From: Bugula neritina
Lineage: Eukaryota > Animalia > Bryozoa
Direction of reading: 5' to 3'
Length of the DNA: 64,000 bases
NCBI GenBank assembly: GCA_964035545.1
Contig: OZ037765.1
Location: forward strand, 7,450,698-7,514,697
The notes beneath the pieces are model-generated. The model was given only the letters and a program-made list of their open reading frames with translations. It did not search any database and was not told the origin of the DNA. Made by a program: the position numbers and the translations under genes. Every line of letters starts with the position of its first letter. The stretch's first letter is position 1. Positions 10,400 through 58,600 of the stretch are shown piece by piece.

Positions 10400-10880
10400 A
10401 GAATATAACTATTACTATAAGCTTTTAAGTTTTGCATAATTTTAAAGCTTTTATTGATTCATTTATTTTCAATGATTATCACTTGATCATGATAATAAAT
10501 CAAAACATAATCATAAACTTGTTGTCAGTAATTACAATTACTGATAACGTGATAAGTGATAATTATTAATTACAATCATTGATAATCATAATAATAGTCA
10601 TAATGATTATGATAAGGGTGTTTTAAACTTTATAAACATTATCAGTAATGAACTATAACTTATAGTTATAGTTATAGTTTTAAGTAATAATCATTAATCA
10701 TAATGATCTTAGTCTTACTACTAATTTTTTTAGTTCAAGCTTAGATTTAAAACTCATTCTCATACTCATATAAAAGATTAACATTTTTCAACTTTAAGTT
10801 AAAGCAAAACTAATATTGATTATAATCATCTTGATATTGATATTCATCACTTCATCATCATGATCATGGAATTCAAATTG
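10400..10880. repeat. 6-bp-periodic degenerate (ANTNNN)n tract in SCO intron 1
   Basis: e.g. GATAATCATAATAATAGTCATAATGATTATGATAAG; ACTATAACTTATAGTTATAGTTATAGT. Confidence 0.7.
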
Positions 10881-11094
10881 GATTTAAATTAAATTGTCAT
10901 GGAAATGTCAGAGATCTAAGTTATAACAACTTTTGATAGCAAGTTTCACCATTTAATTGTGAATATGACAAAAATAGCAAATGCTGATTTGAAATCAAGT
11001 ATTTGACTTATGCTTCAGCGTGACTTTCAGTTTTATTATATAATTTATACCTCGGCAACACAGCTTTTGATCGCGATTGTTGTTGTATTTGTAG

Positions 11095-11253
11095 TGAAAT
11101 TGCTTTATAGGCAGCGTCAAGTTGGGAGTGACTGAGTGCAATAGTTTGCGACTCTCGCGTTCAAAGTTGGACAAACCCTAACTTCAAACTCGAGAACTTT
11201 GAACTACTGCACTCAGTCACTACCAACTCAAAGCTGCTTATAAAACAATTTAG
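11095..11253. repeat. Imperfect inverted repeat (~75-bp arms), MITE-like hairpin at the SCO 5' end
   Basis: TTGCTTTATAGGCAGC..AGTTGGGAGTGACTGAGTGCAATAGTT versus AACTACTGCACTCAGTCACTACCAACTC..GCTGCTTATAAAACAA. Confidence 0.8.
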
Positions 11254-11534
11254 AGTGAAAAGTAACAAACTATAGCGCGTGAACCTAACAAAGTGAAAGC
11301 GGTCCACACATTATAGAAACGATGGTAAAAGTTATATGAAGACAACAGAACCTTTTGGTCGATACGTGCTTCAACCTGTGAAATATAACAATACTAGGTA
11401 GACATTCTTTTAAATGAAACACCGATTGAAATTAAATGATCTGAATAAAAAAGTATTCAAATTTTATAGTAAAGAAATACAATAAAAAACATTAATATTT
11501 GATTTTTATTTTAATTACATAAAAGAAAACTTTT

Positions 11535-12430
11535 TTAGCGGAGTGTACCGGCGATTCCGATTGTCTCAGATGGCTAGCATCATGGGGCTGCCACACTACA
11601 GTCAAAACGGCCATCTTGAACGCGTTTTCGAGGCTAAGCGTTGACCTCTGTGACGTCACAACTGAACGCAACAGTCAGTTTTTCGCGATGCGATGAAAGT
11701 TCAACATGTTCAACTGTCATCGCTGAAGTTGAGCGATCAGCCAATCACTGACTGGCCAGGTAAACCCTGATTGGTTAAGTGCTTTTACTTTTTCCACGTG
11801 CTACTAGCGAGCATTATTATTTGATTTGGTTCTTCGAAAATTATATTAATTTACTTTTAAAATAATTATGATGAAGTTATGTATGAAAGTTTCAATAAAT
11901 CATGAAAATAAGTATTCATTAGATAAATTTTGCTAAATTTTATCTGCATATTTAGTTTTTCTAATTTGGTTGAATTTTATTAGCGTACTATAACTATTAT
12001 TTTAGTTCTTTAGGCTAGTGAATGAGCTTGAATAAAGCTAAGTAATATCATTAAATAAAGCTAGTAATTTTGAATAATTGAAGCTAGTAAATTAGAATAA
12101 AAATAACTAGAAAATCTTATTAAATTATGCTAGTAAATCTCAAAAAATTGCGCTAAGATTAATTGTTGGTTACTGTGGATACTGCAGAAACTGGTTTATG
12201 GCATTCCTATTGGTTTAAAAGTTTACTGCGAGACTAGAGACAGTTAGCTTTCATCGTTCGTAGTGAACTGTAGTGTGACCAGTAAAAAGTAGGACGTGAC
12301 GTTGAAGGCATGCGCAAGCAGCTCCAAAATGGCCGCCACAGTCGCGTTTCGACTGTAGTGTGTTATGGGCATCACTGCTACACGGCAGGATGTCACTAAG
12401 AATATAAATATTAGTGGCGAGTCATGCACA
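11535..12430. promoter_or_regulatory. Probable bidirectional promoter region between SCO (-) and NDUFA9 (+)
   Basis: Two CpG-rich patches. CRE palindrome TGTGACGTCACA (~11649), CCAAT boxes (~11740, ~11770), E-box CACGTG (~11795), NRF1-like GCATGCGCA (~12308), YY1-like GCCATCTT/AAAATGGC in opposite orientations, repeated ACTGTAGTGTG. Confidence 0.55.
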
Positions 12431-12449
12431 TTGATAGAGAACCCCATAA

Positions 12450-13550
12450 AATTATTATACTTGTAGTATTAGTATTACTATTTCAATTTGCTATGCTTAA
12501 TCCTAAGATATACTTGTAGTAATAGTATGCACTACGTTACTGTGCAAATAAAGTAAAAATCAACTACTACTAGCAGTAGCTATACCGTATGGCCGTGGCG
12601 TATAACTATAGGTATAGACTTACTCTTAGAGTATAGTAATAGTAATACTAATAGTAATAACTAAATAAGTAATAGTTATACCTCCGTACACAGATATTGA
12701 TACTCATTAATCATTAATGATTAAATTTAAAATTAATGAGCTACGTCTACGACTATTTTTACCCTAGTTACTGTTAAAGTCTAACTCTAACTCTAAGCAT
12801 TAAATTTAATTATGATTGCGGATATCAGTAAGTCGCATAATCTTAAAGTTAAAGTTAATGCAATGGTAATGATAATCATTAACATTACAGTTTAAGTTAG
12901 TAAGTTACGATTATCATGACTAAGTCATTGTCATTAAGTTTAACATTAGCCAATTAGGGTTAAGAATAAGTTTAACTTTCAGCGTAATACTGATCGCCGG
13001 TCATGAACAAATATTTATTTATATTATTATTATTATTATTAATTTTAATATTATAAATTATTTTCATAATGATAATCATAATGTATTTGTTCAGTATAAT
13101 GATAAGTATAAACTGCACACTTAAAGTATTAGTAAAATAATAAAGTGACTATAACTATTAGTATTACTACAAGCATAACTTTTACTATAAGTATAACTCA
13201 GTATTAGTAATAGTATAAGATTGAGCATAGGAGTATAGCTCTGTAGAAATATTAGTATTGCAGTTACTAGTATTACTATTATTGGCATTGCCAAGTATAA
13301 CTATAAGACTAATAGTAATATTGTAATAAGTATAATATAAAATTAAATAAAATAAAAATCATATGCTTGAAGTTGAGCTTGAAATTAAATGTAATAAGTT
13401 TGGCATTTTTATAGTCATAATCATAATGAATAATCATTATAATGATACTAACTATCAAGTTGTTATTATGATTAATAATAAGATAATTTTATCATTAGAA
13501 CTAGAAGTTTATCATTAAATATAATATTTATTAAATTTGTATTACGACAA
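12450..13550. repeat. 6-bp-periodic degenerate (ANTNNN)n tract in the presumed NDUFA9 5'UTR intron
   Basis: e.g. AGTATAGTAATAGTAATACTAATAGTAATAACT; CTAACTCTAACTCTAAG; TAAAGTTAAAGTTAATG; AGTCATAATCATAATGA. Confidence 0.8.
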
Positions 13551-14253
13551 TGAGTAACATTATCAGAACAACGTTTTATATGTCGCTTTAGGCTGCTAAA
13601 AGCGCCTGCTCTCCAGTTGCAGTATAAAAACCGTTTTTGTAGTCTTGGCATTGTAGCACTGATTCAACAACATTTTACACCTCCGTGTATACATCTAATA
13701 TGTGCAACTGTGTTTATCAAAGCTATAGTATTCCTTATTTAATGATGGTAACTGTAAGTCATGGCCTGGCACTTTCATGTTTCAACGTTTGTTAAATCAT
13801 TATTATTTAAATCCTAAATCATTAATTATTTCGCTGCTACTAATACTGGTCGTATTATTGTAACAAATGTTTAGGTTTTCACTGTTGAGTGAAAGTGTAT
13901 CAACAATGATTATATTGTCATTCAACTGTTTTCTATGAATCTTATAGAAAATAGCTCTATTACCAAAGTAAATGGCAGGCTTGTGCAGGCAAGCAGCCTG
14001 TGCATTGCAAGCACCTTTGACAGCAACCACACCTAAAGGTACTATATTTATTTACATGCATATATCTTTTTGAGAGTACTGAACAGTAAATGAAACATAC
14101 TCATTTCTAAAATAAAGCATTTCAACATAACTTTAGACTAACAAAGTTGATATATCTAGATAATATAGTTGTGAGTACACTAGGTCAGCAATTAACTTTT
14201 GCAAAGTCACTCTTTAATTGGTTGCTTTCCACTATTTTATTCACTCCACTGCT

Positions 14254-14990
14254 TTACTCAGCTTTGCATGTGCTACAAATTATGATGTTCCAGATTCTGA
14301 TCTTCAGCTTCTGCCTCTCTGGTTGTTTTGACTGATTTCTTGTGGGCTTCATTCTATCTATAACAAAGAATAATAACTTAAATGAATTTGAGTTTTAATA
14401 TAGCCAAATAATTTTTACTTATATTGATAGCTCAACATTAGTAAGCTAATTCAGGAAACTTTTGATTGAATAATTATGCACTTACAATAATACACTGTTC
14501 TGCAATCACTGACTTCATCTATTTCAAAGACTCTGCCATCAATTCCATCTTTGCTTAGATTGATTCTAATTTCCTCTCCTGTGTCCAAAGATATCTCACT
14601 GGTGCTTTTGGCAGGCATCTTTCTTGTCTTGGCCATGTCGCTGTTGGTCATTAGCTTAATTTCACCAGTTTGCTCTGAACTTGTTTCAGCGATATCTTCG
14701 GCTAATGCTTTTGTACCTTCCTTCTCCTTGTATGTAATAGCCTTTTGCAGAAAGTTGTTATAAATCCGTTGAATTATGGAGGCAGGTATGAAGGTGTGGC
14801 TAGTTTTCCAAAGGCCACATTTGCTTTTCCATTTGACTTTTCGTTCTTTCACTTTTAATTCTAAGTGTCTTTACAGAGCTTCATTAATTCTGCTTTTGTA
14901 GATGGCGAAGGTCACGTGTCTCAGTTGACATTTCATTTGACTTTTCATTCTTTCTCTTTTAATTCTAAGTGTCTTTACTAGGTTTTTGCT
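14254..14990 (-). other. Unknown spliced ORF or decaying gene, antisense within the NDUFA9 5' intron (copy 1)
   Basis: Open frame 14852-14486, donor GTAAGT at ~14485, acceptor TTGTTATAG at ~14358, last exon YRMKPTRNQSKQPERQKLKIRIWNIIICSTCKAE*; no clean start codon found. Confidence 0.45.
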
Positions 14991-16181
14991 GCAAAATTTA
15001 AAACAGTATGTGCAGATACATTGTAGCATTTTATGTCTACTTTTTATAACAACTATAAACTGAATAGAAACAAATTCTCAAGTAAACTTTTATAATTAAT
15101 ATTAAATAGTAATGGATACCAGTATCAGCTTAATGTGATGAACTTTAACTATTGAAGTGAAATAATTAGCCGGTTGAGGTTACTCACCATACTAGAAAAA
15201 CCAGGCAATACACCATTGTAGTAAATACACCTTGTAACAACCTGATAAGTCAATTCTCATTATAATTCAAATATTGAATAAAGGTCCAAAGATTAACAAG
15301 AAACTCCATGTTAAAATGTATTTGTAAAATATACTGGTTCTATAAGGTTGACAGCAACTTAGTGTAGCATTAAGTGCATGACATGAAGTAAATCATTGTA
15401 TGGTGTAAAGCAAAACATAAACACTGGACTCTTTAGTAATGTTATAATGCTATAGTTAGATGAATGAGGAATTTTAAAAATTATAAATTTTTATATAAGA
15501 ATGAATTAGGATGAATATCCACCCAAACTATGGCAGTATAATTATTTAAGCATCAAGAGCAAAAATTGCAAAGAAACTTATTAGTTCAAAAAATATCAAG
15601 TGTAGAGCCAAGAATAAGCAGAGTTCCATTTAATGGATGTGTGTAGATATAGTCTTGGTACAATATGCAGATTCAGCTCGTTTCTTATAGCTACTGCTAT
15701 TAGAATAAAACCTTCCAACATGTACTTCTGCAGAGATTACATGAAGTCCTATGAGCTTTTTCTGTGAAGGAGTTGAAGCTTTTGTAATTATACTTGATGT
15801 CAAATAGAATTTTTGACTTTTCTACGATAACATTTGCAGTAAACAGGCTCACTACATATTTATATTATATAGATAGTCCAAAACAGTTTCAAATCTCACC
15901 CTAAGCAAATTGGAGAAAATTAGTTTCATTTTTCATACTTAGAGATTTCTAATAACTATTAAAAACAGCTGGCAATTCATGTATTAATTTATGAATCACC
16001 TGTAAAGTGTTGCTTTGTGTTTGTGAATGTGCGTGTAATAAAATTAAAATTATTTGTAGCTGAAGTTTCTTGAAAAAAATAACTTTAAGATAGGATTTCT
16101 GTTTGTTGAAAAGGGGTTTATACATAAGCAACAACAAACTTCTGATGAATAAAGCTGAATACATGTTTTTAATTTTTCTAG

Positions 16182-19100
16182 ATGCTCTACATATTTGCTA
16201 GAAAATCTGATAAGATGTGTGTGAATGTTTCAGGTAGAATTTCGTCTGAGAGGTTTAAATGACTTTCACCAACATATTTAATTATTTCAAAATGTTACAT
16301 GTTGCAATTAGAGAGTTGCTGGTAAAGTTCTAGAATGATTATTATAAATTGTAGCTCTGTTGAGTCGAGGGCAGCCATGTTGTTCTACACTGCTGACAAA
16401 CAGGAGAGGTAAAAGTGACCTGACTGCCTACAAACGAGGCAGAGGTGGAAGATCTTCATTCAGTGGGATCGTAGCAACAGTGTTTGGTGCTTCTGGATTC
16501 CTGGGCCGATATGTTGTAAACCAGCTGGGTAATATATTGTTGTATCAGCATTACAATTAATTGTCATTTAGGGACAGCAGTAGAGAAATTGAGATAGCCT
16601 AAGCTCTTTAATTTCATTATTAAAATTTGGTTTGGGGCGCGGTTGCATAACTTCTTATGCTACATTTCTTATCTAGAACTCAGGCTTTTCTCAATTTCTC
16701 CATTACTGCCCTTACCTCCAGTTTGTGCTTTGTGTGTTTGGTAGTAAATGTTTTTGTTGTTGATTATTTAAAATGTTGGAGTTGATTTTACTTTTAGGTA
16801 AAATAGGAGCCCAGGTGGTGATACCATATAGATGTCCAGAGTATGACGTTGATCACCTCAAACTCATGGGAGACTTGGGTCAAATATTATTTACTCCGTT
16901 CTACCTCCGAGATGAGGCGTCCATAAGAAAAGCAATGAAGTATTCTAATGTTGTCATCAACCTTGTTGGCAGAGAGTGGGAGACCAAGTAAGTGATAAAC
17001 TTAATACGGAAAACTTGTATTGTGTTATAGCCAGCTCACTGTGATTCAGCTAAACTGATAGTAAAGTTAAATTGAAACTTGACTGCCTCTTCACAGGTCA
17101 GCTGTATATGACTGTTGTTGGTAGCTACTTTCTGCATCAGTTGATCATTTAGCCTTGTTGCTGAACATAGGGATATTTTTTATGACTGAATGAGGTTCAC
17201 CAACAATGATGCTAAAATCATCACAGAAACTTGTGTTTTACTACTCATAAATGTTCAAAAAATGAACAAAATGTAGCAAGATTTGAAAAATATCTAATTA
17301 CTTTGATTTATAATTATTAACATTTCAATACTTTAAGGCAAAAAACACATGGTGATAGCAGCTAGGATTTTATAAGATTGGCGACAAACTTGATATATTA
17401 AACTTTAAAGGCATAGCAAATAAAGTAAAATGTATTGCAGTTACAAATTACAATAGAAAGTATTTAATTTTTTAAAAATATCCTATTGCTAATAACATTA
17501 GCCGGTTATGCTGAAGCTTCAGTCTCTCATTAGTTTCTATGTACAAGCTGACAGTGTATCTAGTATATTATATATATATTTAGTCATAAACAACCATTTG
17601 GAGTTTTGTTATCAATTTCAGGAACTTTACATTTGATGACGTGCACGTAGCTGGCGCAGAGCTCATTGCCCGTGTTGCAGCAGAACAGCGTGTAGAGAAA
17701 CTCATTCATCTATCAGCTATAAATGCTTCCGACCCTCAGTACACACTGTGGAATAAGGCCTCTCAGTTTACTGTTAGCAAGGTGAGCTGGTCTTGTCTTC
17801 TATTATTGCATTTGACCTTTACCCTTGTACCTCTCACGTTGTAGCATAGTGGGGTTTTGGTGCTGTTGTTCGTTTTGGAGCTTGGCTGTTGAAGAATCTC
17901 TGACACACTTCATTTATTTATAATGACATATTTTATTATAAAATTCGGGATATAGTAAAATGCCGGATTTAACTTGCAGAGCTGTTAAATTCAGTGTCCG
18001 GTCAAAATGGTGCAGTTAATAATGACACAAGTAATAATGGCACAAATGGAAAAGTAGGTAAAAATGGCACATTTTCAATATTAGGGTTTGTGGTAAGGGT
18101 TTAATTGGCTTGGGGATGGGGTTTGAGTTTGGGGTTTAGGAAAATTTAGCATCAGTTTGCCATTTTTACCTACTTGCCATTTGTGCCGTTTTTACCTGTG
18201 CCTCTTCTACCTAAAATCATTGAATTTAGCCATTTTGTCCCGATACAGACATACATAAACCACAAAACTAGGATTCAAGCCCTTCTCGTGACCTATGGAA
18301 TTTCGTGAGAAATGGATCCATGAGATATGAAGGGGAATACTCTATATAAATATTTGAATACTGCATAGATAAAGTATGCCAGGGATTCTTTAAGTTGTTG
18401 ATGTTATATCTAATAGGTCTATCTACAAATGAGTTATTATATTTATATGGCGGTTGGTGATCACCAACTCTTCATTATGCTGTAGGGTAAGGGTGAACAA
18501 GCTGTAAAAGATCAGTTCCCAGAAGCTGTTATAATGAGACCATCAGATATGTGGGGTGATGAAGATCGATACCTCAATTATTACGCTAGTCACTGTAAGT
18601 ACTATCACTAGAACATAATAATTGACTGTTTAAATGCTGTCTTACTCTGTTTTTCTATGTGGAACTTCAGAAAAATGTATTTCTTTAAATTTGATGTTAC
18701 AGTAAAGTAGTTTGAAATTGGGCAGTGAAAGTAGGATTTTATTCACCAATGTTCTTAATTATTATCCATGTTGAAATAATTTGTAAGTATAGCCCTACAA
18801 TTCATCTCCCGGTAAACAAAGATACAGCTATTATTTTCAGAACTGATTCACTTTTTGTGATCTTTACACATATCCTACACAGTTTTACACACATATGATC
18901 TGTGAAAGCTTATAGTAATTTAACATCCAATTGTGTTAATACATTGTAGACAGGAGGCACTTTAATTCCTTTCCTTTGTGGCAAAAAGGCGAAAATACTA
19001 TAAAGCAACCAGTTGATGTAAGTTGTACACATGCAATTTTTTCTCTCTCCTATCTCCGATTTGTCCTGTTCGCATATTAGACACATGCAATTCAATAATA

Positions 19101-20687
19101 CTATACAAATCATGAGTTTATAATAGATAAAATTAAATTGTACAACAGTTTTTCTTCAATCATGTTTTTACAGTTTGTCGAAATACTGAAAGAGCTGATG
19201 TGCATCTTGTAAGGTAGAGATTTTCTTGTGCAATATTTTAGCACATGAAAATCTTTTGCTGACCTGACCCTGTTTCAAGTTTCATTCAAATTATTTTTAT
19301 GTTATACTATTATTCACAAATAACCCTATTATCATGAGCTATAGGTATTTTTATATTTGCTTCTACTAACAGGTACGAAATGTAGCTCAAGGCATTATTA
19401 AAGCTATTACAGAAAAAGGCACAAATGGCACCACCTTTGAATGTGTAGGGTAAGCTGAGATTTGAGTTTGTTAAGAAATTTTAGTATGCCTTTAGATGTT
19501 TAAACCATAATGTATTATTATAATAAATTATTAAATATGTATCATTTCTTTTAGGCCATCAAGTTACTATTTATCTGATTTAGTCGACTATTATTTTGAT
19601 GAGATGAGGATGGGTCACATCAGAAAGATCCCAATTTTACCTTCTTTCATGTAAGTCACTCGTATAAAACAAGAAAGTAGTTTTTTGCTAAAATACTGTA
19701 AGTACACTATTATATAAGTGCGAATCTTTTACCTTGTTCACTATTTTAATGTGCATTCGATATTGAAAGACGTTGGAGAGTATTTTACCATTTCTGTGCT
19801 ATGATCTTACATATTTCTATGCTGATATATATTTATAGGTTGAAAGCGCAGGTCTGTGAGACTATTTTCCCTGCTACTCCACCTATGTCTAGAGATAAAC
19901 TCATCAGGGTATGTAGACATGACATTGATTGAAGTCACAAGAATCGTTTTAATAAACTGATTTGTTCCATTGAGCTGCAAATGTATTGTGTAATAGACCC
20001 TTTTCAAAGGTCTCCGATGTCCCCTTTACAATTAAGAGTTGTGTCCTCCCAAAGCAAATAGGTAGGTTGAATCTTTGTATAAAGAGCCAACTGATTAAAA
20101 ATATAACGTTTGACTGATACTTAAAATTCTAATTATGTATGCTATAGAATTGTTCTTTTAAGAGATAGATATTTTGATATAAGCACACATATTAGCAGTA
20201 CAAAAAAATTTGAAAAAGTTTCTTCGTGGAGAATTTTGAAAAAATAAACTTGAAAGCATGTTTGTGGATTTGGTTATTGAGCAATGGTAAAGTGGCACGT
20301 CTGCATTGCTCAGCAACCAAAACCACAAAAATGAGTTCAAGCTTATTTTGTTCAAAAGTTTTTATCTTGGGAGGACACAACTCTTAATTGTAAGGGGGAC
20401 ATCGGGGTCCTCTGAAAAGGATCTATTATTGAGTAAAATTATATACAAACCGCAGTTGCTGTACTAGTAATGTGTCCTTTTAGGAAGCCAGCTCTGATAT
20501 TCTCACTGGCTGTCCTACATTGGAGGACCTGGGAGTGAAACCCAGTCCTCTGGAGCCTGCTGCCAGATATCTATTGAAAGTTCACAGGGATAGTCCAGAA
20601 TATGAAGATAGTTTAGGAGAGATCGACGATGCACCCCCACCCCCTACAGTTGCAGAGATTGAGGAGGCTAAAAAAGTTTACTTTTAG
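16182..20687 (+). CDS. NDUFA9: NADH:ubiquinone oxidoreductase subunit A9 (39 kDa, SDR fold), 10 coding exons
   Basis: Exons ~16182-16233, 16355-16528, 16798-16987, 17622-17781, 18486-18594, 18950-19017, 19373-19449, 19555-19630, 19839-19907, 20484-20687. Motifs [62 protein letters not shown]. The first exon is the least certain. Confidence 0.93.
17998..18218. mobile_element. Small non-autonomous DNA element with inverted subterminal repeats and a G-rich telomere-like core
   Basis: GGCACAAATGG..AAGTAGGTAAAAATGGCA versus TGCCATTTTTACCTACTTGCCATTTGTGCC, flanking TTAGGGTTTGTGGTAAGGG...GGGGATGGGGTTTGAGTTTGGGGTTTAGG. Confidence 0.6.
19991..20428. mobile_element. MITE with ~60-bp terminal inverted repeats in the last NDUFA9 intron
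   Basis: TAATAGACCCTTTTCA..CCGATGTCCCCTTTACAATTAAGAGTTGTGTCCTCCCAA versus TTGGGAGGACACAACTCTTAATTGTAAGGGGGACATCGG..TGAAAAGGATCTATTA; right end also kept in copy 2 (~25920-25995). Confidence 0.8.
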
Positions 20688-20871
20688 GATTCATCTTTAA
20701 GCATTTTTTTTGGTTTGTTATGTGTAGAGTATTTCGACTATGAAGAGTTGAGTGGAACTTTTATTCACATTTATTCCTAACACCATCAGTAATTTGCAGT
20801 GTTGTCTTTGAAGAAAGTATTTTGTAAAAATCGCTTGTTTTTACCAATAAATAAATTACTATCTTATATAC

Positions 20872-21280
20872 TATTTTTTTGGCTAGGAAACATTGTCGTG
20901 AAGTGATTGTAAAGTAAGTTTTCAGTGATACAGCTGTGCAAGTTTTTATTAATACATGCAACAACAAAAAACCAATGGAAAGAAAATCTACAATAATTAC
21001 CTGCTGCCCTCAGCAATTCTGACATCCTCAACTTCTTGTTATCATAAACAGAGACCAATCATCCTAAATGAAACCAGCAATTAATTGGGAAAAGTTCCAA
21101 ACAAAATAAAACTTTTGCTGTGAATTGATGATGTACTGAAAGTGTTTCACCTCTATGAGTGGCTCATCTTTGATATGAGGAGCTGCTTGGATTATCAGTT
21201 TGTCTGATTTTTTTCACCATTCTACTTTGACCAACTGTAGGCCATAGCGGAAACTGTGAGCCCCATCTGTTGGTATAAAG
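20872..21280 (-). pseudogene. Duplicated, deleted remnant of DNAI7 3' exons
   Basis: 21150-21278 matches exon 27002-27130; 21000-21066 matches exon 26806-26907 with internal deletions; last coding exon missing. Confidence 0.88.
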
Positions 21281-21719
21281 CTTTGGCTATTTTGCCTCAG
21301 CATTATAGCACTAATCAAACAATACTTTGCACTTCTAATTCCATGCATACAATTAATATTTTAAACTGTATCACAGCTATAGTATTCCTTATTTAGTGTC
21401 AGTAACTGTGAGCCATAGCCTGCAGCACTTTCAACTTATTTTTGTATTTATAATTATTTTGCTGCTACTAGTATTGGTCATAATTGCAACAAATGTGTAA
21501 TTCCTCACTGTTAAGTGAAAGTGTAACGATAATGTGTATATATTCGTTCAACTGTTTTCTATGAATCTTATAGAGAATAGCTCCATGGCAGGCTTGTTGT
21601 CATTATATGATAGTTGAATATATTGTAAGCTTATCTCATTTATTGGATCTATATAAATACTGTGTTTTATATGATAATTCATCCACCCTAATATAAATCA
21701 GTAAATGATTCACATCCTA

Positions 21720-23433
21720 CAGTGCTGTGAAAAGTTTTTAAGGATGCTTGCAGAATTTCTATGTATCTTGTTTAGTAGGCATTTCTGGTAAGTTCTTGGT
21801 ATTTTCCTGTAAGTTCTATATATCAAAATGGCCCCTAGAATGTGCACATGTTTATAAATTGCTACTGTTGTGATGTTTTCCACCCATTTTCGAGCTAACT
21901 ACACAAGCAGCTAGGAAAGCGCAACTCCTGTATTTTTATGTTCCCAAAGTTTATCACTTTTGATAACCACAAAAGGCTAAACAGTGAAATTTGACTTTGT
22001 GCATGGCATCATGATATCATAAAGTATGACTTTCCTCCATAATTTGAAATCTGTCATTAAGTTGTGAGCTTTACATGGTGTCTACTTGGGTGCTGCACAG
22101 AGACAAAATGAGAGCAGTAAATCTTAGTTCAGAAGCAAGGTTTGTAATAATTTTCTTGCATAAGGAAGGTTATTCAATTAGGAAAATATTTGAATAGGTT
22201 GGCAAAAGCAAAGACAATTGTACGTCAAATTATCAAGAAGTTTATGGATGTGTAGCAGATCGACCTGGAAGTGGACGACCAAGAATAAGCACACCCAGAG
22301 ATAACAAGGTTCTCCTTGGGATCAGCAAAAATGATCATCATAAAACAAGTCCTGAGTTGGCTAAGAATGGTCAGAATCAACAGGAACAACAGTTCTGACA
22401 TCCCTGATAAGACGAAGATTGTTGAGCCATGGTCTACGTGGCTGCAAAGCAAAAAGAAAGCCTCTACTAACCGAGCTACGGTGGGCCAGGGAGTATGCTA
22501 GTTGGACGCTGAATGATTAGAAAAACAGTAATTATTTCAGATGAATCCACATTTAATCAATTAATGTGAACAATCAGGCTGGAAACTGTTTTGTTAGAAG
22601 ATACCAGTATGAGGAATATAACCCCTAATGTATTCGTCCAGCAATTAAGTACTCTATCAGTGTTATGTTCTGGGGTTGTATAACATCAAAAGGTGTAGGC
22701 CAACTCACTATTTGCTCTGGAATGATGTTATTGCCCAAAAATATATAGAGAATCTCAATGCTAAACTTCTTCCAATCACCAAAAAAAACTTCTTATTTTA
22801 AATGAAATTTACATATTTCAAGATGACATGCACTATGCCATCGGGCAAAAGACTTTTTAAGAGTGGATGAAAAAGCAGAGGGTCTCAACACTTAGCTTAC
22901 CAGCACAAAGCCCTGACTTGAACCCAATAAAAAAATTATGGCCCAGAATGGCTAAGGTAGTCTCTTCAAAGAAGCCAACAACTAAGGTGACACTCACATA
23001 GTCTGTAATTCATGCATGGTATCATGTTGTGACTGAAAACGAGTTGGAGAAGCTGTACGAGTCGATGCGACATGTGATATTAAGAATAACGGCTAGCCAA
23101 CAAAACATTGATGCTAAAATTTAAAGCACTGTGTGTTGCAATGCTGCTATAAGGTGTATAACAAATCACGTAGGTATATAATATTTTTCTATATTTTAAG
23201 TAAAATATTCTAATGTCATACAGTACACACAAATTGTGAGAGCATCAAATAATTCCCATATATGCATAGTATCTCATTGTTTCACCCAAATTTTGGAAGG
23301 AAGTAAAAAGAGACACTAATAATTTATATGAATGAGACAAGGAGATCTTGAGGATCATTTTGATAGGCACCATGCCTATGGAAATGCTTTTATTATGTTG
23401 TAAAATTAGTCCTTAAACTTTTGCACAGCACTG
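21720..23433 (+). mobile_element. Tc1/mariner DNA transposon (~1.7 kb) with a degenerate transposase
   Basis: TA-CAGTGCTGTGAAAAGTTTTTAAGGA ... TCCTTAAACTTTTGCACAGCACTG-TA (TIRs plus TA TSD). Remnants FSDES (~22535), VMFWGCITSKGVG (~22662), FQDD (~22817), PAQSPDLNPI..LW (~22900), with stops and frameshifts. Absent from duplication copy 1. Confidence 0.92.
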
Positions 23434-24081
23434 TATAAACGCCTACAAATGACTAAAATTAAAACTACACAAATTAGTTACAACAAATCAAGCCATTAAG
23501 ACGCTTGTGCAGGCAAGCACCTTTGACAGCAGCCACACCTATAAAGGTACTAAATTTATTTACATGCATATATCTTTTTGAGAGTATTGAACAGTAAATG
23601 AAACATACTCATTTCTTAAAAGAAATGATATATTTAATAAAGCAGCTTTTAGGTGCTTTATTCTGTCTTTAGCATGTAACTGGTAATTTCATGATCATAG
23701 TTATATTTAGTTATTATTCATCAGACACAACTTTAATATGTTGCATTGTATTACTGCCAATGTTATAATTGATCTGAGATTCAAGATACACATTTAGATT
23801 GTTTTGTGCAAATATAATTTTTAGCATTGTTGAATCTCCAAAAATGCAACAATGTGTAAACCAGAACAATTTAATAATATGTCGTATTTTCAAAGTTGCA
23901 AGATACTATGCATGCTATTGTATTGAAGAACATTTTTCACCACAACACTCGAACATGACTTTCGACTAGCAAAGTCCACCTATCTAGATAATATAGTTGT
24001 GAGTACACTGGGTCAGCTATTAACTTCTGCAAAGTCACTCTTTAATTAGTTGCCTTCCACTACTTTATTCATTTCACTACT

Positions 24082-24945
24082 TCACTCAGCTTTGCATGTG
24101 TTACAGATTATGATATTCCAGATTCTGGTCTTTAGCTTCTGCCTCTCTGGTTGTTTTGGCTGATTTATTGTAGGCTCCATTCTATCTATAACAAAGAACA
24201 ATAACTTAAATAAATTTGAGTTTCAATATATAGCCAAATAATTTTTACTTATATTGATAGCTCAACATTAGTAAGCTAATTTAGGAAACTTTTGACTGAA
24301 TAATTATGCACTTACAATACACTGTTCTGCAATCATTGACTTCATCTATTTCAAAGACTCTGCCATCAATTCCATCTTTGCTTAGTTTAATCTCAACTGT
24401 TCTTTGTTTTTTCTCTTCTGAGTTCAAAGATATCTCACTGATGCTTCTGGCAGGCATCTTTCTTGTCTTGGCTATGACGCTGTTGGTCATTGGATTACTT
24501 TCATCATTTGTTTGAGAAATACTCCCAGTTTATTTTGAACTTGTTTCAATGGTATCTTCGGCTAGTGCTTCTGCACCTTCCTTCTTATCCTTGTATGTAA
24601 TAGCCTTCTGCAGAAATTTGTTAAAATCCTGTTGAATTATGGAGGCTGGTATGAAGGTGTGGCTAGTTTTCCAAAGGCCACATTTGCCTTTCTATTTAAT
24701 TTTTTGTTCTTTCTCTTATAATTCTAAGTGTCTTTACTTGGTTTCTGCTCCTGTAGACTTAGCTGCTCTATGTTCTACTGCTCTACTTACAAAATTGTAA
24801 TTCAATTTTTGAATCAGTTGATAAAACAGAGCTTCATTAATTCTGCTCTTGTAGATGGCGAAGGCCACATATCTCATTTGACATTTCATTTGAGTTTTCA
24901 TTCTTTCTCTTTTAATTCTAAGTGTCTTTACTAGGGACTTACTGC
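24082..24945 (-). pseudogene. Copy 2 of the unknown antisense spliced ORF, with nonsense changes
   Basis: Same donor, acceptor and terminal ..ICNTCKAE*; in-frame indels versus copy 1, but TGG>TAG (~24693) and CAA>TAA (~24531). Confidence 0.6.
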
Positions 24946-25299
24946 AAATTTTATAAGAGATAGATGGCAGTTATGTATGAATTTTATAACAATTTATATA
25001 AATTTACATGCAGAGAAATAAATCTTCAATTGAACTTGTAACTAATATTAAATAGCAATGAATACCAGTATCTGCATAATGTGATAAAAACTTTAACTGT
25101 TAAAGTGAAATAATTAGCTGGTAAAGTTTACTTACTGTACTAGAAAACCCAGACTACATCATTGTAGTAAAGAAACTTTATAGAAACCCGATATGACAAT
25201 TATCATAAATCTAATAGATAAAAATGAACTGCATGTTAAAATGTGATGGATAAATATACTGGTCAAAAGCTTGACCCCAACTCAGCAAAACATAGTATA

Positions 25300-26256
25300 A
25301 TGTTGATCACACCTGAAACTTATGGGAGACTTGACTCAATTAATATTATTTATATACTCCATTCTAACTCCAAAATGAGGCATTCATAAGAAAAGCTATG
25401 AAGTATTCTAATGTTGTCATCAACCTTGCTGGCAGAGAGAGTTCGAGACCAAGTGAGTGCAACTAGATACAGAAACTTGCTTTTTGTTACAACCAGCTGC
25501 ATATAAACTTGAAAATAGCAATTTCAGCAATACATTCAACTAAACTGGTTTTTTAAACTGTTGATGTTCTAATTACTATAGGCACATCTATCATCAACTA
25601 AGACTTTGTTATATGGTGGTTGGTGATCACCAGCTTTTCATTATATTCTGTAAGGCAAAGATCAGTTTCCAGAAGCTGCATGTTATGATCTTATGTACTT
25701 GTAGGTTGAAAGCGCAAGTCTGTAAGACTATTTTCCCTGCTACTCCTATTATGACTAGAGATAAACTTATCAGGGTATGTAGACATGACATTGATTGAAG
25801 TCACAAGAAAAATATAATATTTAATAAAATGATTTGTTGTTCTGTTGAGCTGCAATTGTAGAATAATATTTGCTAACTACAGTAGCTTATACAAGTTTAT
25901 TTTGTTTAAAGTTTATATCTTGGGAGGACACAACTCTTAATTGTGAAGGGGACATCGGGGGGGGGGGGGGTGGGGTCCTCTGAAAAGGATCTATTGTTGA
26001 ATAATATTTGCAAACTACAGTAGCTTGTACTAGTAATTTGCGCTTTTAGGAAGCCAGCTCTGATATTCTCACTGGCTGTCCTACATTGGAGGACCTCGGA
26101 GTGAAACTCAGTACCCTGGAACCTGCTGCCAGATATCTATTGAAAGTTCACAGGAATAGTCTAGAATATGAAGATAGTTTAGGAGAAATCGACGATGCGC
26201 CCTATCCCTTACAGTTAGTTGCTGGGATTGAAGAGGCTAAAGAAGTTTACTTTTAG
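25300..26256 (+). pseudogene. NDUFA9 pseudogene (fragmented duplicate)
   Basis: Fragments of exons 3, 5 and 9 plus a near-complete last exon (26050-26256), with frameshifts and large deletions; first exons absent. Confidence 0.9.
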
Positions 26257-26513
26257 GATTTATCTCCAAGAGTTTTTTTTGTTATGTAAAAAGCATTTCG
26301 GCTATGAGTAGTTGAGTGGAACTTTTATTCATATTTATTCCTAACACCATCAATAATTTGCAGTGTTGTCTTTGAAGAAAGTATTTTGTAAAAATCACTT
26401 GTTTTTTAACAATAAATAAGTTATCATCTTATATACAGTCAAACTCATTCAAGTAGCAAAAGTGTCCACTTGCTAACAGAAAGAAAGCAATAAACCAGCT
26501 GAACTTGTGGAGT

Positions 26514-36740: not shown

Positions 36741-36744
36741 GATT

Positions 36745-37309: not shown

Positions 37310-37520
37310 ACAAACTCAAAGTGAAAGTCTTTTTGAAAGTAAAACTCATACTCATAGTCATAGTGAATGTCAATGTGATGGTATAAGTATTACTATTAGT
37401 CATACTGATACTGATACTATTAGTATTACATTTAGTGATTTACTCATAGTAATGAAAGATTCAAATGAAACTAATGTTCTGATAAATCTATGTTGATTAT
37501 CATTATGAATATGATGTTTA
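37310..37520. repeat. 6-bp-periodic tract in ETFRF1 intron 1
   Basis: ACTCATACTCATAGTCATAGTG; AGTCATACTGATACTGATACTATTAGTATT. Confidence 0.75.
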
Positions 37521-42467: not shown

Positions 42468-47494
<5,027 letters not shown>

Positions 47495-50921: not shown

Positions 50922-51944
50922 GATGTGCAGAGCCACAGATCTCCCCACTAGTATAACTTGCTACTACATGCCATAACAGTAACCTAGTAAGATAAAAAAA
51001 GACAAATTTATTTCATTGTTTGACATATATATAATTTACTACAGTCTTTACATGGTTTTAAGTGAACTCAAAAGAAAATGAAATTTTGAAAATATACTAC
51101 TGCATCAAACTAGAATTACAGTACAATGTAAACTAAAACCTGAAATTTAATGTTTATAGTTCAAGTAAGATCATGGTTCCCATCATCGTACAGCACATAA
51201 AAATTTTAAATTATATGTAGTAGTTTAATGTGTCAAAGAAAAGGTTAAAGAGCTTTTTAATGTTAAATGTGGGTATGTTTGCCTAATTTAGTACAAACTG
51301 GGAAAAACAAGGCAAAAATTATTTTTTGCTTGAAAATGACAAAAGTTGCCCAACTGATGTAATTTGACCAGCTGAATTCAAATATATATGTAAAAAATTG
51401 TTTTGAGTGGGTAATCCAACAGTTTGAGTCAAGTAGGTATATGACATTACAGCAATTTCAGTATACATAGCATGAGCTTTAGGCTGGTAAGATTGTTATT
51501 CATGAGCTACAAAGTATAATAAAACAGAAAATTGACTTTAAACTGGTTGAAAGAGGGAAAATTGTTCAAATTTATTCACCATAAACAACTATGAGTACAT
51601 ATATTGTGTGAATGTTTCATACACTAATTTTTTAGCAGAATAGAATTTATTGATTTTCTACATGATCAGATGCATTACAAAAGAAATTATTCATTAACAA
51701 ATTGAAAAGATACAATTGAAATTATTACAATAAAAAATATGCTGTTTTTTTATAATTGTATAATTTTTTTTCAGTCTTTGGCCAACTTTTCAAAATTATC
51801 TTCGCCTCTGTTATACCCCGTAACTGCCATAACACCTATAATAAACATTATTTCTTAAAAAGTCTTGGTGCTTATATGATTTGCAAAATATCTGAGTCTA
51901 TTTTATACTGAATTGAATCATTTGCATTAATTTTCTGTAATTGA

Positions 51945-52110
51945 TGGATTATAATAGTCGTAATCATGACGATATTGATAATCATCAATTTCAAACTCAA
52001 ACTGAAACTGTAATCGTAAAAGTTGGATTTTGAGGAAGTCAAATATTAACAACTTGCAACTCCTACTAAATAGTTATAGTTATAAATTAAAACTACCAAA
52101 TGATTAAATG
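51945..52110. repeat. Short 6-bp-periodic tract in MAP2K intron 1
   Basis: ATAATAGTCGTAATCATGACGATATTGATAATCAT; TCAAACTCAAACTGAAACTGTAATCGTAAA; TAGTTATAGTTATAA. Confidence 0.65.
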
Positions 52111-53739
52111 TCATGAAACACTCACCTATTTGTAGGATGTAGGTTAATTAAGAGATTAGGAATATTTTTTTGTTTAATTCAACAAGTCAATTGAATTTCA
52201 ATTTGAAACCCGTAAAATGTTGCTAAGCGGATGCGTCAGATTAATCTCTCTCAAACTTGAATTGCAATATTTCTATGTGAAATTTGACAAATAACTATAA
52301 TTTTTATGCAGCAATATAATTATCAACAAGTTCTCAATATCTATTCGAAATAAAAATAAAACTTTAGAGAAATTAAATTTAGTTTTTATTTTTATTACAA
52401 GACTTTTGAAAGTAAGTCGCTTAATAAACAGACAACTCCGCAGTAATTTCGCGCCATTTGGTTATCCATTTGCACGAAGAGGAACGGAGAGGTGAACTTT
52501 GAGTTAACTTCAACATTCAAAATCACATTGTATGCAACCACGCCAATAAAACCGGTCAATATGCATATTGTTTAAAAGAGAAAAACATATTCTACAAAAT
52601 GAAATAAATAATGTAAAGTTTTAATGAACTTGATAAAAACTATGTCTTGTTAAATGAACAAAACCTCTGAAACTTCAAAAATGTCACTAAGATATTTAGT
52701 ACAAAATACCACAGTAAACTTCAATTTCTTAGTCTAATGTTGAACGCATGTTATCAATGTTTATTCTTTCAGATTATTTAGAGGGTTTTACACAAAATAA
52801 GTGTAATTACAATCTTTCACAGCTAAAAAATACTGAAATTAGACAGCTTAAAAGTTTTATGTTTGGCATTAAGGATTTGTACTAAATTATGTGAACAGAG
52901 CCATGTACTATTTATATAAACCAAATCATTTAAAAGCTTTCTTCACATTGATATACCTATTAACTTCGTATTGAACTTACAGATAAGACAAATGTTAATG
53001 CAAGGAAAATTTTTTCTTCAGTATAAATAAAATATCAAGGTGTTTTGCCAAGATTTCAACCCACTAATTTGGAACACAATTCCAGTGATTTTATAGTTTG
53101 CTTTAATCCAGATTGAAATTGCAAATGTAGATGTCGCTAGTATAAAATACTTAAGCAGGATCCTTACTACCATATAATTTACAGCTTTATTTATAGTTAA
53201 AGGTTCTTTGATAAGATAAATAAATGGTTAAATAACTCAAGCACTTATAGACAGCTCTACTGTCTAAATGTGCTTGAAAAACAATTATATGATAATAGTA
53301 TTAGCAGCACTGACAGTTGTTGAACTAAATAAACTTTTACATAATAATGAAAGCAATAATAAATATTTACATACTTTAAGCACTTGTTAAAGCCATAGGC
53401 AAGAATTCAAAATTGTCTGTATTTGATGTAGAGAGCTGACCATTCCAATACCATTACCGTATTCATGATAACACTCAATTATAAATATATTGTAAGTTAT
53501 ACTAATACTCACATTAAATCTAATATAAAAACATTAAAACTTAATAACTTAAAAAAATAAAATGTTATCAAGCTTTCATTGCATTTAAGAAAAGATGAGA
53601 ATTGGTAAGAAAATAATATGACATATTTGTGAGGTTGCATATATACAGATGTTAGTTGACCATGGGCAGCAGACCTAGAAATTGTCAAATTTTGGTGATC
53701 TGATTTCATTATATGCTATTGCAAGTAAAATAAGTATAA

Positions 53740-55130
53740 CAAATATAATAATATAATAATTACTAAAAATATTATGTAATTATAATGCATCAAATTTAAC
53801 TATGCAAAACTAAAAGTCAGATCTAATAAAATTAATAAATATGATAATATTTAATCTTATATTAATATGATTATTAATAAAACAATAATCATAATAACCA
53901 TCAAATTTGAAAAATTAAATAAATAATACTATTATAAACATGTCATAAATATTATTAGTCAACATTATCATTATGCTTATGTATTAATAGTCTAAATTGG
54001 TAATTCTTTTGTCTATGAGCTATGAATTTCTTCAAGTTCATCTAGTTCTACTTCTGGAAGAAAATATTATATTCTACTTATACTAATACTAATACATTTG
54101 TGATTCACTAATTATAGTACTAGTAGTAAAACTAAAATTAAATTAAGTTAATCAATTTTAATTATAATTACAAAACCAACAATTGAACATGCCAGACTCA
54201 GTGACTGTGAGTGTGACATTAACTGATTAAAGTGATATGGCTTAACATATGCCACATAGCCATGCCCATACGCACATGCCTATGTCTATCACTCTATGAG
54301 TATGGCTTTGCCTTAAAGGTTACAGTCACAAATTTATAGTTAGCGTTATACTTATAGTTGTCTTGTCTTGTCTTGTCTAGTTATTCACTAAGTTATTGGT
54401 AAGCTACTGTAATTCAAAATTTTAAACTCAAAGTTGTACTAATAGTAACAGTAATACTAATAGTAATAGTTATAGTAATACTAATAGTAAAACTTAAGAC
54501 TTATGAGTTATAGCCATGCCCATGGGCCATGATCATGAATTACTAATAGTATGATTGTGATGATTATCATTATTATTATGATTACGATAATCATAATATA
54601 AATATTAATCACAATCATGAATCATAATGATAATCATTACGATTATTAATATTATCATAATTATTACTGCTACTGTGCTACTTTTACTACAAGTATAACT
54701 ATAAGTATTAGTAGTAGTACAAGTAATAATATTACTATAAGTGAATAACTATTACAGTATTAGTATTTGTATAACTTATAAATTATTAGTTATAACTAAT
54801 AACTAATACTCAAACTAATACTAATAGTAATACTAATACAGTAATAGTAATATTAATAATAATATTAATAAGTTAGTTAATAAGTAATAACTATAAGTAT
54901 AAGTATTACTATTAGTATAACTATAAGTTAATGTATAAGTATAAGTATAACATTAACTATAACTATAAGTATTAGTATAAGCATAAGTAATATTAATAAC
55001 ATAAACAGTGAAATTGAAGGTGATTTCACAAAAACAAGAATACATTGCAGACCACTTCTAGCAAGCCCATACCCGTACTTCCATTAAAATTTACTATACT
55101 ATTAGTATTTGTATCAATAATTAATATTTA
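53740..55130. repeat. Long 6-bp-periodic tract with no assigned gene
   Basis: ACTAATAGTAACAGTAATACTAATAGTAATAGTTATAGTAATACT; ATTATGATTACGATAATCATAAT; AGTATAACTATAAGTATTAGT. Confidence 0.85.
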
Positions 55131-55659
55131 CAGATTAAGATTCAGATTTACTTTGCACTTGCAGTTTCTTGTTCGATGAACTCTGGCGCATTCTTAGACT
55201 GTGATTTGTATATATCATAATAACGGCTATTTACCAAATGTGTTAGAGTTGTTATTCGAGATTAATAGTCGATGAGTTTCTGAACACTAGCTATGTCACA
55301 CCCTCTTCTCGAAATGTGACTATAGAGTTATCCCTCTAACTCTATTAACGAGAACAGAAGCAAGCTTATACAAAAACAGATAACTCCGTATACATACACA
55401 TGAAGACGATCATATTTTACGTATGCAAAATACGGGGTTATCTTTTCATAAATAGCTAAAATACTAGACCAAACGCCTTCACAAGCACTGCGGTGCGACC
55501 GAACGACAACTTGATTTCATCGAGCCTAGGGCAAGATGATATATAACCGTTTCCGCTTATTCACTCCTCGCACATGGTAAACGTTGGGAAATTCAATTCA
55601 GCCGACAAACTTTTCAACAACACTTATTTCCAATTTATTGTTCCTTAGATTGCTATAAC

Positions 55660-58600
55660 ATGGCTGAGATTTGTGATCAAGTGCCAGATGAACAGGTTAG
55701 TAACGCCGATTCTTATAGTATTAGTTACGTTACATCTTTATTTTCATTTTGTAAACCTCCACCTGATCTGAATCAGCAAGTGAGAAACTGAAACTTAACG
55801 TCAAAGTGAATGCATAATTAATATGTGATACTGGTAGTGGTAGTGATACTGATTCAGATTGAGGGAAACTGAATAAGAAAGTTAATGTGAATGCCAGTCA
55901 ATTTGAATTTTATATACATTGGGTTAAGAATAATATTCAATTTGTCATTTGAATTTCATATTAATATTCATATTGAATTTGATATTGTCTATTGATCATT
56001 TTGATAGTGATTTTATGTTCATGTTCAGTAATGATTATTTGTAATTGTAAATTATTTCAAACCTGACTTTGGCAAGCAACTGCATTTTTATTATTGTTCT
56101 ATTGGTTGAAACAAAATTTTTGATTGCCCAACTTGAAGTATTGAAGTAGTTGTTTTAATAAAAGATTGTTCAGTTTGTTACTGCTGGCTTCACACCTATA
56201 AAATGGAAGATATTGCTTTTTACAAAGATTCTTTGTGTCTTATCACTAATTTACATTTTGAAATTGAAATATATTTTTATTTTATGAAGCTTAAAATTTT
56301 ACCGATGCAGCCCTGCAAGCTTGTCATCAAAAGCCCAATACTTGCTCTTAGAGTTATTGTACACTTATTGTGTCAGAATTCAAAAGTAATGATATAAGTA
56401 TTTTCCTTCTTTCTATTAAAAAATGTACAATTGAAATATGCTTTGTTGGTTCTATCTATGCATGCTCTAGCAGAAAAAATGGCTGCTTTAATAAATAGAA
56501 ATGAAATAGAAACGCTACACTCCTGGTTGGTCATCAAAAGGATAAATGTTTTTACTATTTTACACTTGGTTGTAACTTTGCATTCCCTGTACAATATTTC
56601 ACATCTTACTTTTGCTGTCTTGTAGATAATAAAGGCACTCAAAGTGTTCCGTGAACTTGATGCCAAGAAAGACAAAATGTCGCTCATGAGCTCAAATGAC
56701 ATCCGCCTGTCATTTTCTTTCTTGAAACTTCCAAGCCAAGCATCAAAAAATTCCAAAATGCTGAAAATGTAAGTTTATTAAAACAATTCAGGGAAACAAT
56801 CATTGATGCCAATATTTAATAATTATATTTGGTATAATTATATATGATAGATTTATAATTTTCACGTTATTAAATTTCAAGATCAGATGAATTTATAGAC
56901 AGTACCAAGAGATCATTTCATATAATATTTTGATTAAATGGTGCGGTAATTGCCCTTTCTTCGTTAAAGTTCTTCTGCCACATTTAAAAGAAGCTAGTTG
57001 CTGCTGTGCCCTTGTAACTATTAGATTCAACTATCTTTTTGGTTAACGTAACTTATTCGATAATGGAATTGTCATGTTTTGAAATTTTAATTATGTTAAA
57101 TGGGCAAATAATAGTTTTAATTTTCTATCCCAACACCCAATATATTGACACTTTGTTCTGTTGTTTTACGGCTATTACTACTAATAACCATATTGGATAC
57201 ATTGCAGGGTTGAGATAATTGTAATTTTTAATTGGTTTTAATTAATTACATTTCTTCCAAGTAGTTGAATGTAATTTGTATTTGATGTATAAAAATGGCA
57301 TTGTAATTAATTACATATCTAATGTATAGAGCTCTCCCTCACTCCCTGGGCATCGAGGATGTTTGTCTATTTGTTGGTGATGGACTAGAGGCTAAATATG
57401 ACAGGACTAAGATGGATGACGTCTGTCAACTGTATGAGAATAAGTTGGCAAAGCTGGGCATAACTCAAGTCAAGGAGGTATGCTGATTGGCAGCATTATA
57501 CATTGTGCACAATCCTCGATACGAGCTCCAAATTTTCATGTGATTTGCTTTAACAATATTGTTCGTGCATCTTTCAGATTATTCCTTTGCTGAAGTTGAA
57601 ACTAGAATACCAAACGTATGAAGCTAGACGCGCATTGGCATCTAGATATGACTGCTTTTTCGCTGACGAGAAAATCATGAGGCTTCTACCTTCGCTGCTT
57701 GGGAAATCATTTTTTCAACAGAACAAGTAAGTGTAGTCATGTCTTTTACTCTGGATAGTCGACTATGTAGCAGGCTGGTCATATGTTTGTAAATTTGGTG
57801 TTTTTGCTAAATTTACCCTAAATAATAAAATTTTATTTTCTAGAGTGGTGTTTCTACAAATTTGATAGTACTATAGCACATGTATTTATTTACCAAGGAA
57901 AAAAAAATCATGTCCCAGAGACCTAAAGTGTTGGAACTTTTGGCAGTAACATAGTTTATTTTTATTTCCTTCATAATTTTAATTCCATTCCAAAAAGTTT
58001 TATCTAAATAATAACTTTATTTTCATTGTCTTATGCCATCATCGATTTATTTACTTGTCCAAAGAGATAGCTTTAGCAGGTATTCATCTGGTTTTCAAAA
58101 GCTTTTTGTTCTCTTATGTTTATGTCACTTCAATATTTTCAAAAGTCAGTTTTTTTGCAGAGAGAAATGCTAAAATTTGCAAATGATATCTTTTATTAAA
58201 AAGTCTATGAAATGATGTAAATAAAGGTAGTGTTCAATTTGATGCATTTACATATGTACTTGAATTTGTCATGCACCAAGGAGCTTGTTACTATTCTATA
58301 ATGTGCACATGAATTATCCATGGAAAGCAATTATATATTTTGGCCGCTAGTCATGCCAGTCATTCCTGCCACTTTGATAATAACTTTGCTAGTCATATTG
58401 GAAGATCATTCATTATTTTCAATACAGATTTCCTCTCCAAGTCCGACTCGGAGAAAGTTGCATGGAACGTGAGCTAAAGAAAGCTTTGCATACTGTTACA
58501 TGCCCAATTAGTTACAAAGGGAATTCATAGTGAGTAAAAAGTCACTGCTAAATTTACTCTTGACATTTGTTCCTTCTATAATGCTTTTTATGAGGTCTCT

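Follow-up and report, generated by a model that had tools for sequence, protein, structure and literature searches.

A 6-bp periodic DNA lattice downstream of inferred gene starts in Bugula neritina (Bryozoa)

The closest described counterpart of the DNA reported here is the class of periodic An/Tn clusters (PATCs) of C. elegans introns (PMC4947018, PMC7725773, bioRxiv 10.64898/2026.08.08.743475), whose 10-bp signature was proposed to be created by a transcription-coupled mutational bias (bioRxiv 10.64898/2026.08.08.743475). The present analysis concerned a 64-kb stretch of Bugula neritina DNA (the window; assembly tzBugNeri2.1, GCA_964035545.1, contig OZ037765.1, positions 7450698-7514697), in which eight tracts of a 6-bp periodic lattice lie close to putative gene starts. 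The assembly comprises 216,009,554 bp in total, with the longest scaffold of 35,640,107 bp (PMC11480708). The lattice resembles PATCs in its non-coding, periodic and non-homologous character and its apparent location in introns, as well as in the proposal that mutation coupled to transcription produced it in genes active in the germ line, and in a possible licensing role. It differs from them in its period, which is 6 (and 3) instead of 10, and in the depletion of A/T runs, which are clustered in PATCs. Moreover, the lattice is confined to 0.1-1.7 kb past the promoter, is dyad-symmetric and swaps C and G, and no transposon precursor was found for it. The lattice may work like PATCs, but its period and its An/Tn runs place it outside that class.

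Cryptically simple DNA, reportedly described by Tautz, Trick and Dover in 1986, is similar to the lattice in its short-unit repetitiveness near gene starts and its fast turnover by insertions and deletions (indels). The same holds for the 5' non-coding microsatellites of plants (PMC1781443). The lattice differs from both in that neighbouring units are complement-swapped versions of each other, runs of identical units are depleted, a single lattice recurs throughout the genome and no strand bias is observed. Quasi-palindrome template-switch mutagenesis (PMC8604942) yields similar complement-type changes, inverted blocks and fold-back palindromes, but it is known from scattered events at inverted repeats, whereas the lattice forms periodic zones of kilobase scale at thousands of promoters. 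Gene 5' ends or first introns are likewise enriched in short words in the case of plant telo-boxes (PMC3022908) and intron-mediated-enhancement signals (PMC8157754); these are discrete and non-periodic motifs, whereas the lattice is periodic and unrelated to TTAGGG. No description of a 6-bp promoter-proximal lattice was found in the literature searched, whose coverage left out most subscription journals, and the lattice was grouped with the periodic or cryptically simple DNA that marks active genes in their introns.

Structure of the lattice

Tracts were called with a 13-state hidden Markov model (HMM), which was trained on the window and has six phases in each orientation. The model recovered eight tracts and nothing else in the window, with no calls in SLC22 or in internal introns. 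An initial annotation made from the sequence alone had reported the same eight tracts and the same absences, and all eight proved to be present. Pairs of A-N-T at lag 6 exceeded dinucleotide shuffles in each of them, strongly in six and weakly in two. The observed and shuffled counts were 28 vs 11 at 10400-10880 and 73 vs 23 at 12450-13550 (p < 0.002), 19 vs 4 at 37310-37520, 82 vs 23 at 41140-42090 and 116 vs 31 at 53740-55130 (each p < 0.002) and 13 vs 4.5 at 55800-56050 (p = 0.002). The two weak tracts gave 3 vs 0.8 at 36522-36605 (p = 0.036) and 8 vs 3 at 51945-52110 (p = 0.01). These p-values apply to stretches chosen by eye, and the weight is carried by the held-out and genome-wide tests.

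The strand-symmetric A-N-T triplet noted every 6 bp by the initial annotation was confirmed and refined to an oriented unit A-N-T-N-A-T, blocks of both orientations being found within one tract. The unit learned by the HMM was A(.72) N T(.89) N A(.76) T(.67). The whole-base autocorrelation reached 0.515 at lag 6, 0.435 at lag 12 and 0.393 at lag 18, declining further through lag 24, with a smaller peak at lag 3 (0.371), compared with flat controls of about 0.29. No 10-bp signal was detected in the tracts (0.291 and 0.290 at lags 10 and 11), which gives no support to a rotational form of the nucleosome positioning suggested earlier. In-phase chains of units were short, mostly of 2-4 units. Genome-wide, where the evidence consists of pattern counts, (A[C/G]TNAT)x4 gave 18,039 matches at period 6, compared with 224 in the period-7 control, and fewer than one match would be expected from composition alone. 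An excess of period-6 signal over composition-matched expectation was thus found both in the window and across the genome. The backwards pattern was no true negative control because the reversed lattice is largely lattice itself.

Tract orientation was balanced with respect to transcription (4,045 sense and 4,298 antisense bases), with a sense excess in eight of 18 tracts. This makes a sense-strand RNA motif unlikely and sets the tracts apart from clusters of protein-binding motifs in nascent RNA. Branch-point and poly(A)-site explanations were rejected because no strand bias was seen. The evidence points to the level of double-stranded DNA.

Neighbouring units at the two variable positions kept their strong or weak base class, and a swap to the complement was favoured. 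At position 2, the transitions from a unit to the next were C to G in 68 cases, C to C in 42, G to C in 54 and G to G in 45 (122 swaps vs 87 matches); at position 4, the corresponding numbers were 31, 18, 28 and 16. Among 8,446 genome-wide matches to (A[C/G]TAAT)x4, 151 were all-C and 117 all-G, so that 268 (3.2%) were uniform, whereas the minimum under independent draws is 12.5%; the matches overlap, and the nominal p-value overstates the certainty of this difference. Identity of adjacent units, the defining test of a microsatellite, is therefore not observed here. Between the assemblies, C-G was the rarest class of substitution (5%). The same C/G swap was shown by the rare arrays of 7-bp period. 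Such arrays occur, for example, at C3:31404896-31404967 and C1:23808337-23808388, with about 200 other matches, and several of them contain AP-1/Yap-like pseudo-palindromes (TGA-S-TCA, TTA-S-TAA).

The tracts had a GC content of 24%, more TA steps than controls (0.18 vs 0.11), depleted CC/GG steps and a three-fold depletion of A5/T5 runs (2.0 vs 5.6 per kb). Owing to the dyad symmetry of the lattice, they fold more strongly than controls (mean z of -2.3 vs 0.1, and -3.5 as DNA for 54640-54880). Runs of GC-richer hexamers that do not follow the lattice pass gradually into it, and one 14-mer was found in eight of 16 tracts. Tandem Repeats Finder reported short arrays of 6, 12 and 18 bp inside tracts and true (TA)n and (GT)n microsatellites elsewhere, and in Rfam no match at the gathering score was obtained for the window. 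Matches between tracts were mostly of about 70% identity (at best 82%, over short stretches); they occurred in many registers and in either orientation, and nothing in common was found in the tract flanks. A genome search with the tract of the TMC gene matched only cores, on both strands. The tracts are thus mosaics and not copies of one repeat, as the initial annotation had held, and without collinear homology or common ends or flanks they do not form a satellite or transposon family. The period-6 lattice is a sequence class distinct from ordinary microsatellites, repeat families and PATCs.

Placement of tracts at gene starts

The next 200 kb of the contig were used as a held-out set, so that the association with promoters was examined on 264 kb. 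The 5' ends, and with them the term intron 1, were placed using start codons, donor-like sites, CpG patches and the gene table of a second B. neritina assembly, GCA_010799875.2; exons in the held-out part were predicted with a codon model, and spliced models were searched one exon at a time. The HMM placed held-out tracts behind nine more putative gene starts: the head-to-head pairs CAMSAP and SDF2, STPG2 and a minus-strand gene, and SAAL1-like and HEMK1, as well as TMC, cyclin B and a COMM-domain gene (COMMD). The other held-out calls were ordinary mini- or microsatellites or shorter than about 110 bp. As much as 88% of tract bases lay within 2 kb downstream of 17 predicted promoters, a zone making up 13% of the sequence (8,859 bases, compared with at most 3,619 in circular shifts). 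Some promoter anchors were placed with the tracts known, whereas those based on an ATG (NDUFA9, DNAI7, RSL1D1 and COMMD) were blind to them. The placement relative to starts is therefore non-random over the 264 kb with the 5' ends as placed. The claim of a promoter-proximal position, in what are presumably first introns, was upheld with one correction, as the tract at 51945-52110 belongs to a transposon, described below.

A tract was found at all 16 placeable host gene starts of the housekeeping, ciliary or cell-cycle type, plus TMC. No tract was found at the 5' ends of five held-out developmental or secreted-protein loci (two Ig-domain genes, a semaphorin gene, an EGF/collagen/IgGFc locus and UNC5) or of SLC22 in the window. 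Six of the ten held-out test exons reached the Pfam cut-offs (cyclin, Ig, COMM, IgGFc-binding, SHIPPO and ZU5), and the names TMC, semaphorin, SAAL1-like, HEMK1 and SDF2 are suggested by reading of the translations.

The first edge of a tract was located about 100-430 bp from its anchor (about 170 bp from the SCO donor). CpG peaked 200-400 bp on the promoter side of this edge and was low inside the tracts (observed/expected 0.39), which do not behave as CpG islands or unmethylated promoter elements. The CpG or methylation boundary considered by the initial annotation found no support, and gene-body methylation was rejected as a correlate, since genes that carry a tract and genes that lack one had equal gene-body CpG (0.40 vs 0.39). 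Tracts on both sides of a promoter occurred only at diverging gene pairs, while U2AF2, COMMD and TMC had only a downstream tract. An apparent exception at cyclin B was rejected, as a single tract is split there by a recent solo long terminal repeat (LTR) of 568 bp. Even among neighbours, tract length ranged from 80 to 1,700 bp.

No promoter-proximal tract was found at the ETFRF1 loci of Mytilus trossulus and Littorina saxatilis, at the RSL1D1 locus of Lytechinus pictus or on a contig with a 71%-identical ETFRF1, although the true promoter may fall outside some of these loci. From relatives of B. neritina, two Logan/JGI contigs were obtained, both of them unspliced and ending short of the promoter.

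If 17 tracts in 264 kb are extrapolated, the genome would hold on the order of 10,000 of them, an extensive class of animal DNA that has no annotation. In a phylum for which functional genomics is scarce, the lattice indicates from sequence alone where promoters lie and which class a gene probably belongs to.

Turnover and possible origins

Assembly GCA_010799875.2 is about 10% apart from the window assembly. The MAP2K and RSL1D1 tracts persist in it, and the comparison of turnover rests on these two tracts, where low-complexity alignments are ambiguous. Divergence was 0.113 in tract zones and 0.084 in other DNA, so the tracts were no better conserved. Indels of at least 4 bp were five times more frequent in tract zones (19 vs 3.8 per kb), and 6-bp indels were enriched 13-fold (seven in 2.1 kb of tracts vs seven in 26.7 kb; p = 2e-5). 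Three exact 6-bp duplications, present in one copy or two, were found in or beside tracts, and a 7-bp insertion created a palindrome. C-G differences per C/G site were 2.4-fold more frequent in tracts (0.026 vs 0.011; p = 0.017). A held-out tract holds a fold-back palindrome of about 490 bp with arms of 175 and 47 nt and 91-94% identity; its origin from a miniature inverted-repeat transposable element was rejected because it is single-copy.

A localised mutational footprint, listed last among the options of the initial annotation, fits the between-assembly data best. The tracts would be a self-renewing footprint of duplication and fold-back at the DNA level, left by germline-active promoters and possibly co-opted, and this explanation is preferred tentatively, with somewhat less than even confidence. 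The events would take place in transcribed non-coding DNA, within its first 0.1-1.7 kb, supposed to be open and torsionally stressed behind germline-active promoters; gene identity served as the proxy for germline activity. Short tandem duplications, often of 6 bp, would set the period. Fold-back or template-switch copying in the A/T-rich, self-complementary array would swap the central base of A-C-T and A-G-T, and the same copying would flip whole blocks and occasionally yield long palindromes. Uniform runs would be lost, and independent loci would converge on the hairpin-prone A-N-T-N-A-T lattice. Later co-option could follow, as for PATCs, with the lattice marking constitutive genes or buffering their torsion.

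This explanation is supported by the lack of sense bias, the indel turnover, the 6-bp duplications, the C-G excess, the palindrome and the folding. It is also supported because tracts are no better conserved than other DNA, 7-bp arrays swap alike, GC-richer runs grade into the lattice, length varies widely among neighbours and a transposon promoter carries a tract too. Several observations weigh against it. Only 11 of 40 indels of at least 4 bp were multiples of 6. Consensus bases diverged less than other tract A/T bases (5.0% vs 9.9%), a non-significant difference (p = 0.10) that leans towards selection. In toy slippage simulations, with or without random flips of the central base, the ratio of swapped to same neighbours was at most 0.3, compared with 1.2-1.4 observed; therefore, no mutational model yet reproduces the C/G anti-correlation. 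No enzyme is known to make 6-bp duplications at promoters.

Two bolder possibilities, taken together, were judged doubtful though worth serious consideration: a 'self' code specific to this lineage, kept by selection and recognised by a protein dedicated to it, or an undescribed promoter-coupled enzyme writing 6-bp duplications with complement swaps. In the first case, pseudo-palindromic sites phased at 6 bp may license constitutive and germline genes, and transposons may mimic them at their own promoters.

The main rival, a selected binding lattice in which a repeat-reading or dimeric bryozoan protein would coat the first intron of constitutive genes and license or protect them, was considered rather unlikely. 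The putative reader could be a C2H2 array or a dimer on overlapping pseudo-palindromes such as ACT-N3-AGT, and indels would be tolerated if only site density mattered. The convergence of unrelated loci on the same words, including the common 14-mer, would agree with such a protein, and the fixed A, T and A combined with C/G freedom and depletion of uniform runs would suit a reader of symmetric sites. The survival of tracts between assemblies despite their turnover, and their presence at all placeable constitutive-type starts and absence from developmental and secreted-protein loci and SLC22, are also in line with it. However, the conservation of consensus bases was non-significant, the hexamer vocabulary drifts widely and includes GC-rich units, the length range is 20-fold and no candidate protein was identified.

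A selected physical element acting with no sequence-specific reader seems improbable. Such flexible, easily melted or cruciform-forming DNA would absorb negative supercoils behind RNA polymerase II or set the chromatin border of the promoter, which would be consistent with the low GC content, the richness in TA steps, the depletion of A5/T5 and CC/GG, the strong hairpin potential and the sharp position just downstream of the CpG peak. Nevertheless, a 6-bp period is out of helix phase and gives no curvature, and many simpler A/T sequences melt equally, which leaves the fixed A-T-A order unexplained.

It is very improbable that the tracts are ordinary decaying compound microsatellites or cryptically simple DNA gathered near promoters by chance. 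The short arrays inside tracts and the high indel rate could be read in this way, as could the enrichment of microsatellites in plant 5' non-coding DNA (PMC1781443). Slippage, however, makes neighbours identical, whereas here C/G swaps outnumbered matches even though C-G is the rarest substitution, uniform arrays were four-fold depleted genome-wide and true (TA)n and (GT)n repeats were located elsewhere. Such avoidance of uniform repeats is opposite to microsatellite theory and suggests that mutation or selection follows a rule not yet described. Relics of one promoter-targeting satellite or transposon family are scarcely credible, since the one tract inside a transposon and the reported derivation of PATCs from Helitron minisatellites are opposed by matches of about 70% in many registers and both orientations, unshared flanks and core-only genome matches.

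Beside nematode PATCs, the lattice provides a second, independent system in which to ask whether periodic intronic DNA is left behind by germline transcription, licenses genes or does both.

Genes and other features of the window

The names ETFRF1, NDUFA9 and DNAI7 (CASC1) are backed by homologues or by the gene table of GCA_010799875.2, and this table also backs U2AF2 (RRM), MAP2K (kinase), RSL1D1 and CAMSAP. The names SCO and SLC22 are proposed from reading of the translations.

The putative SCO/NDUFA9 head-to-head promoter (11042-12493) contains CpG-retaining patches with YY1-like and CCAAT-like words. The SCO tract (10397-10880, minus-strand gene) lies in the apparent intron directly upstream of the predicted start codon at 10377 and begins about 170 bp past a donor-like site at 11050. 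The NDUFA9 tract (12453-13571, plus strand) begins about 120 bp past the predicted ATG at 12329. A partial tandem duplicate of NDUFA9 at 21300-27127, with 76-92% identity to pieces of 13648-21275, begins just past the tract, has neither promoter nor tract and is present in both assemblies.

The short and weak DNAI7 tract (36522-36605, minus strand) follows a predicted ATG and donor. The ETFRF1 tract (37293-37521, plus strand) lies about 160 bp past a donor-like site at 37134 and upstream of ETFRF1, in a presumed intron of the 5' untranslated region. The head-to-head pair DNAI7 (CASC1)/ETFRF1 (LYRM5) at 35500-39600 also occurs in Littorina saxatilis, and it presumably adjoins KRAS in vertebrates. 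For U2AF2, a CpG patch at 40850-41013 marks the putative promoter; the tract (41143-42056, plus strand) lies downstream of the predicted 5' end, and the upstream side has none. In an intron of this gene, an 18-bp minisatellite of 12 copies (45787-46003) is shorter in GCA_010799875.2.

The MAP2K and RSL1D1 genes appear to diverge from a CpG-retaining head-to-head promoter (55258-55698), with the RSL1D1 ATG at 55660, the same start being annotated in GCA_010799875.2. In that assembly, the sole clear CpG patch that lies upstream of MAP2K is shared with RSL1D1; therefore, the MAP2K tract is 53461-55144, and MAP2K is probably transcribed from the shared promoter. This tract, the longest one (minus strand), lies in the presumed intron 1 and has a self-complementary core at 54640-54880. 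The RSL1D1 tract (55785-56050) lies in the presumed intron 1, about 125 bp past the ATG, and is kept in GCA_010799875.2. The last exon of RSL1D1 (60080-62080) has 666 codons with internal repeats of about 165 aa, with one repeat fewer in GCA_010799875.2.

The presumed intron 1 of MAP2K also holds a polymorphic 1,632-bp copy of a non-autonomous DNA transposon at 51271-52902. It is absent from GCA_010799875.2, occurs in at least six full copies of 89-96% identity and has imperfect terminal inverted repeats with ATGT on both flanks. The weak tract 51945-52110 lies downstream, on the minus strand, of the element's own patch of CpG and YY1-like and CCAAT-like words (about 52400-52550) and belongs to this promoter-like patch and to no host gene. 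Mobile-element insertions cluster in or beside tracts. Besides the solo LTR in the cyclin B tract and the MAP2K transposon, a Gypsy-like piece seems to split the SAAL1-like tract and a long interspersed nuclear element fragment abuts the TMC tract (held-out sites L006:1400-1969, L021 at about 1-400 and L004 at about 4700-5350).

Small contigs of the assembly (C101, C110, C66, C160, C230 and others) carry intronless Ras-family genes with many in-frame TAA/TAG codons and are probably ciliate DNA, in which TAR would be read as Gln, left among the unplaced scaffolds.

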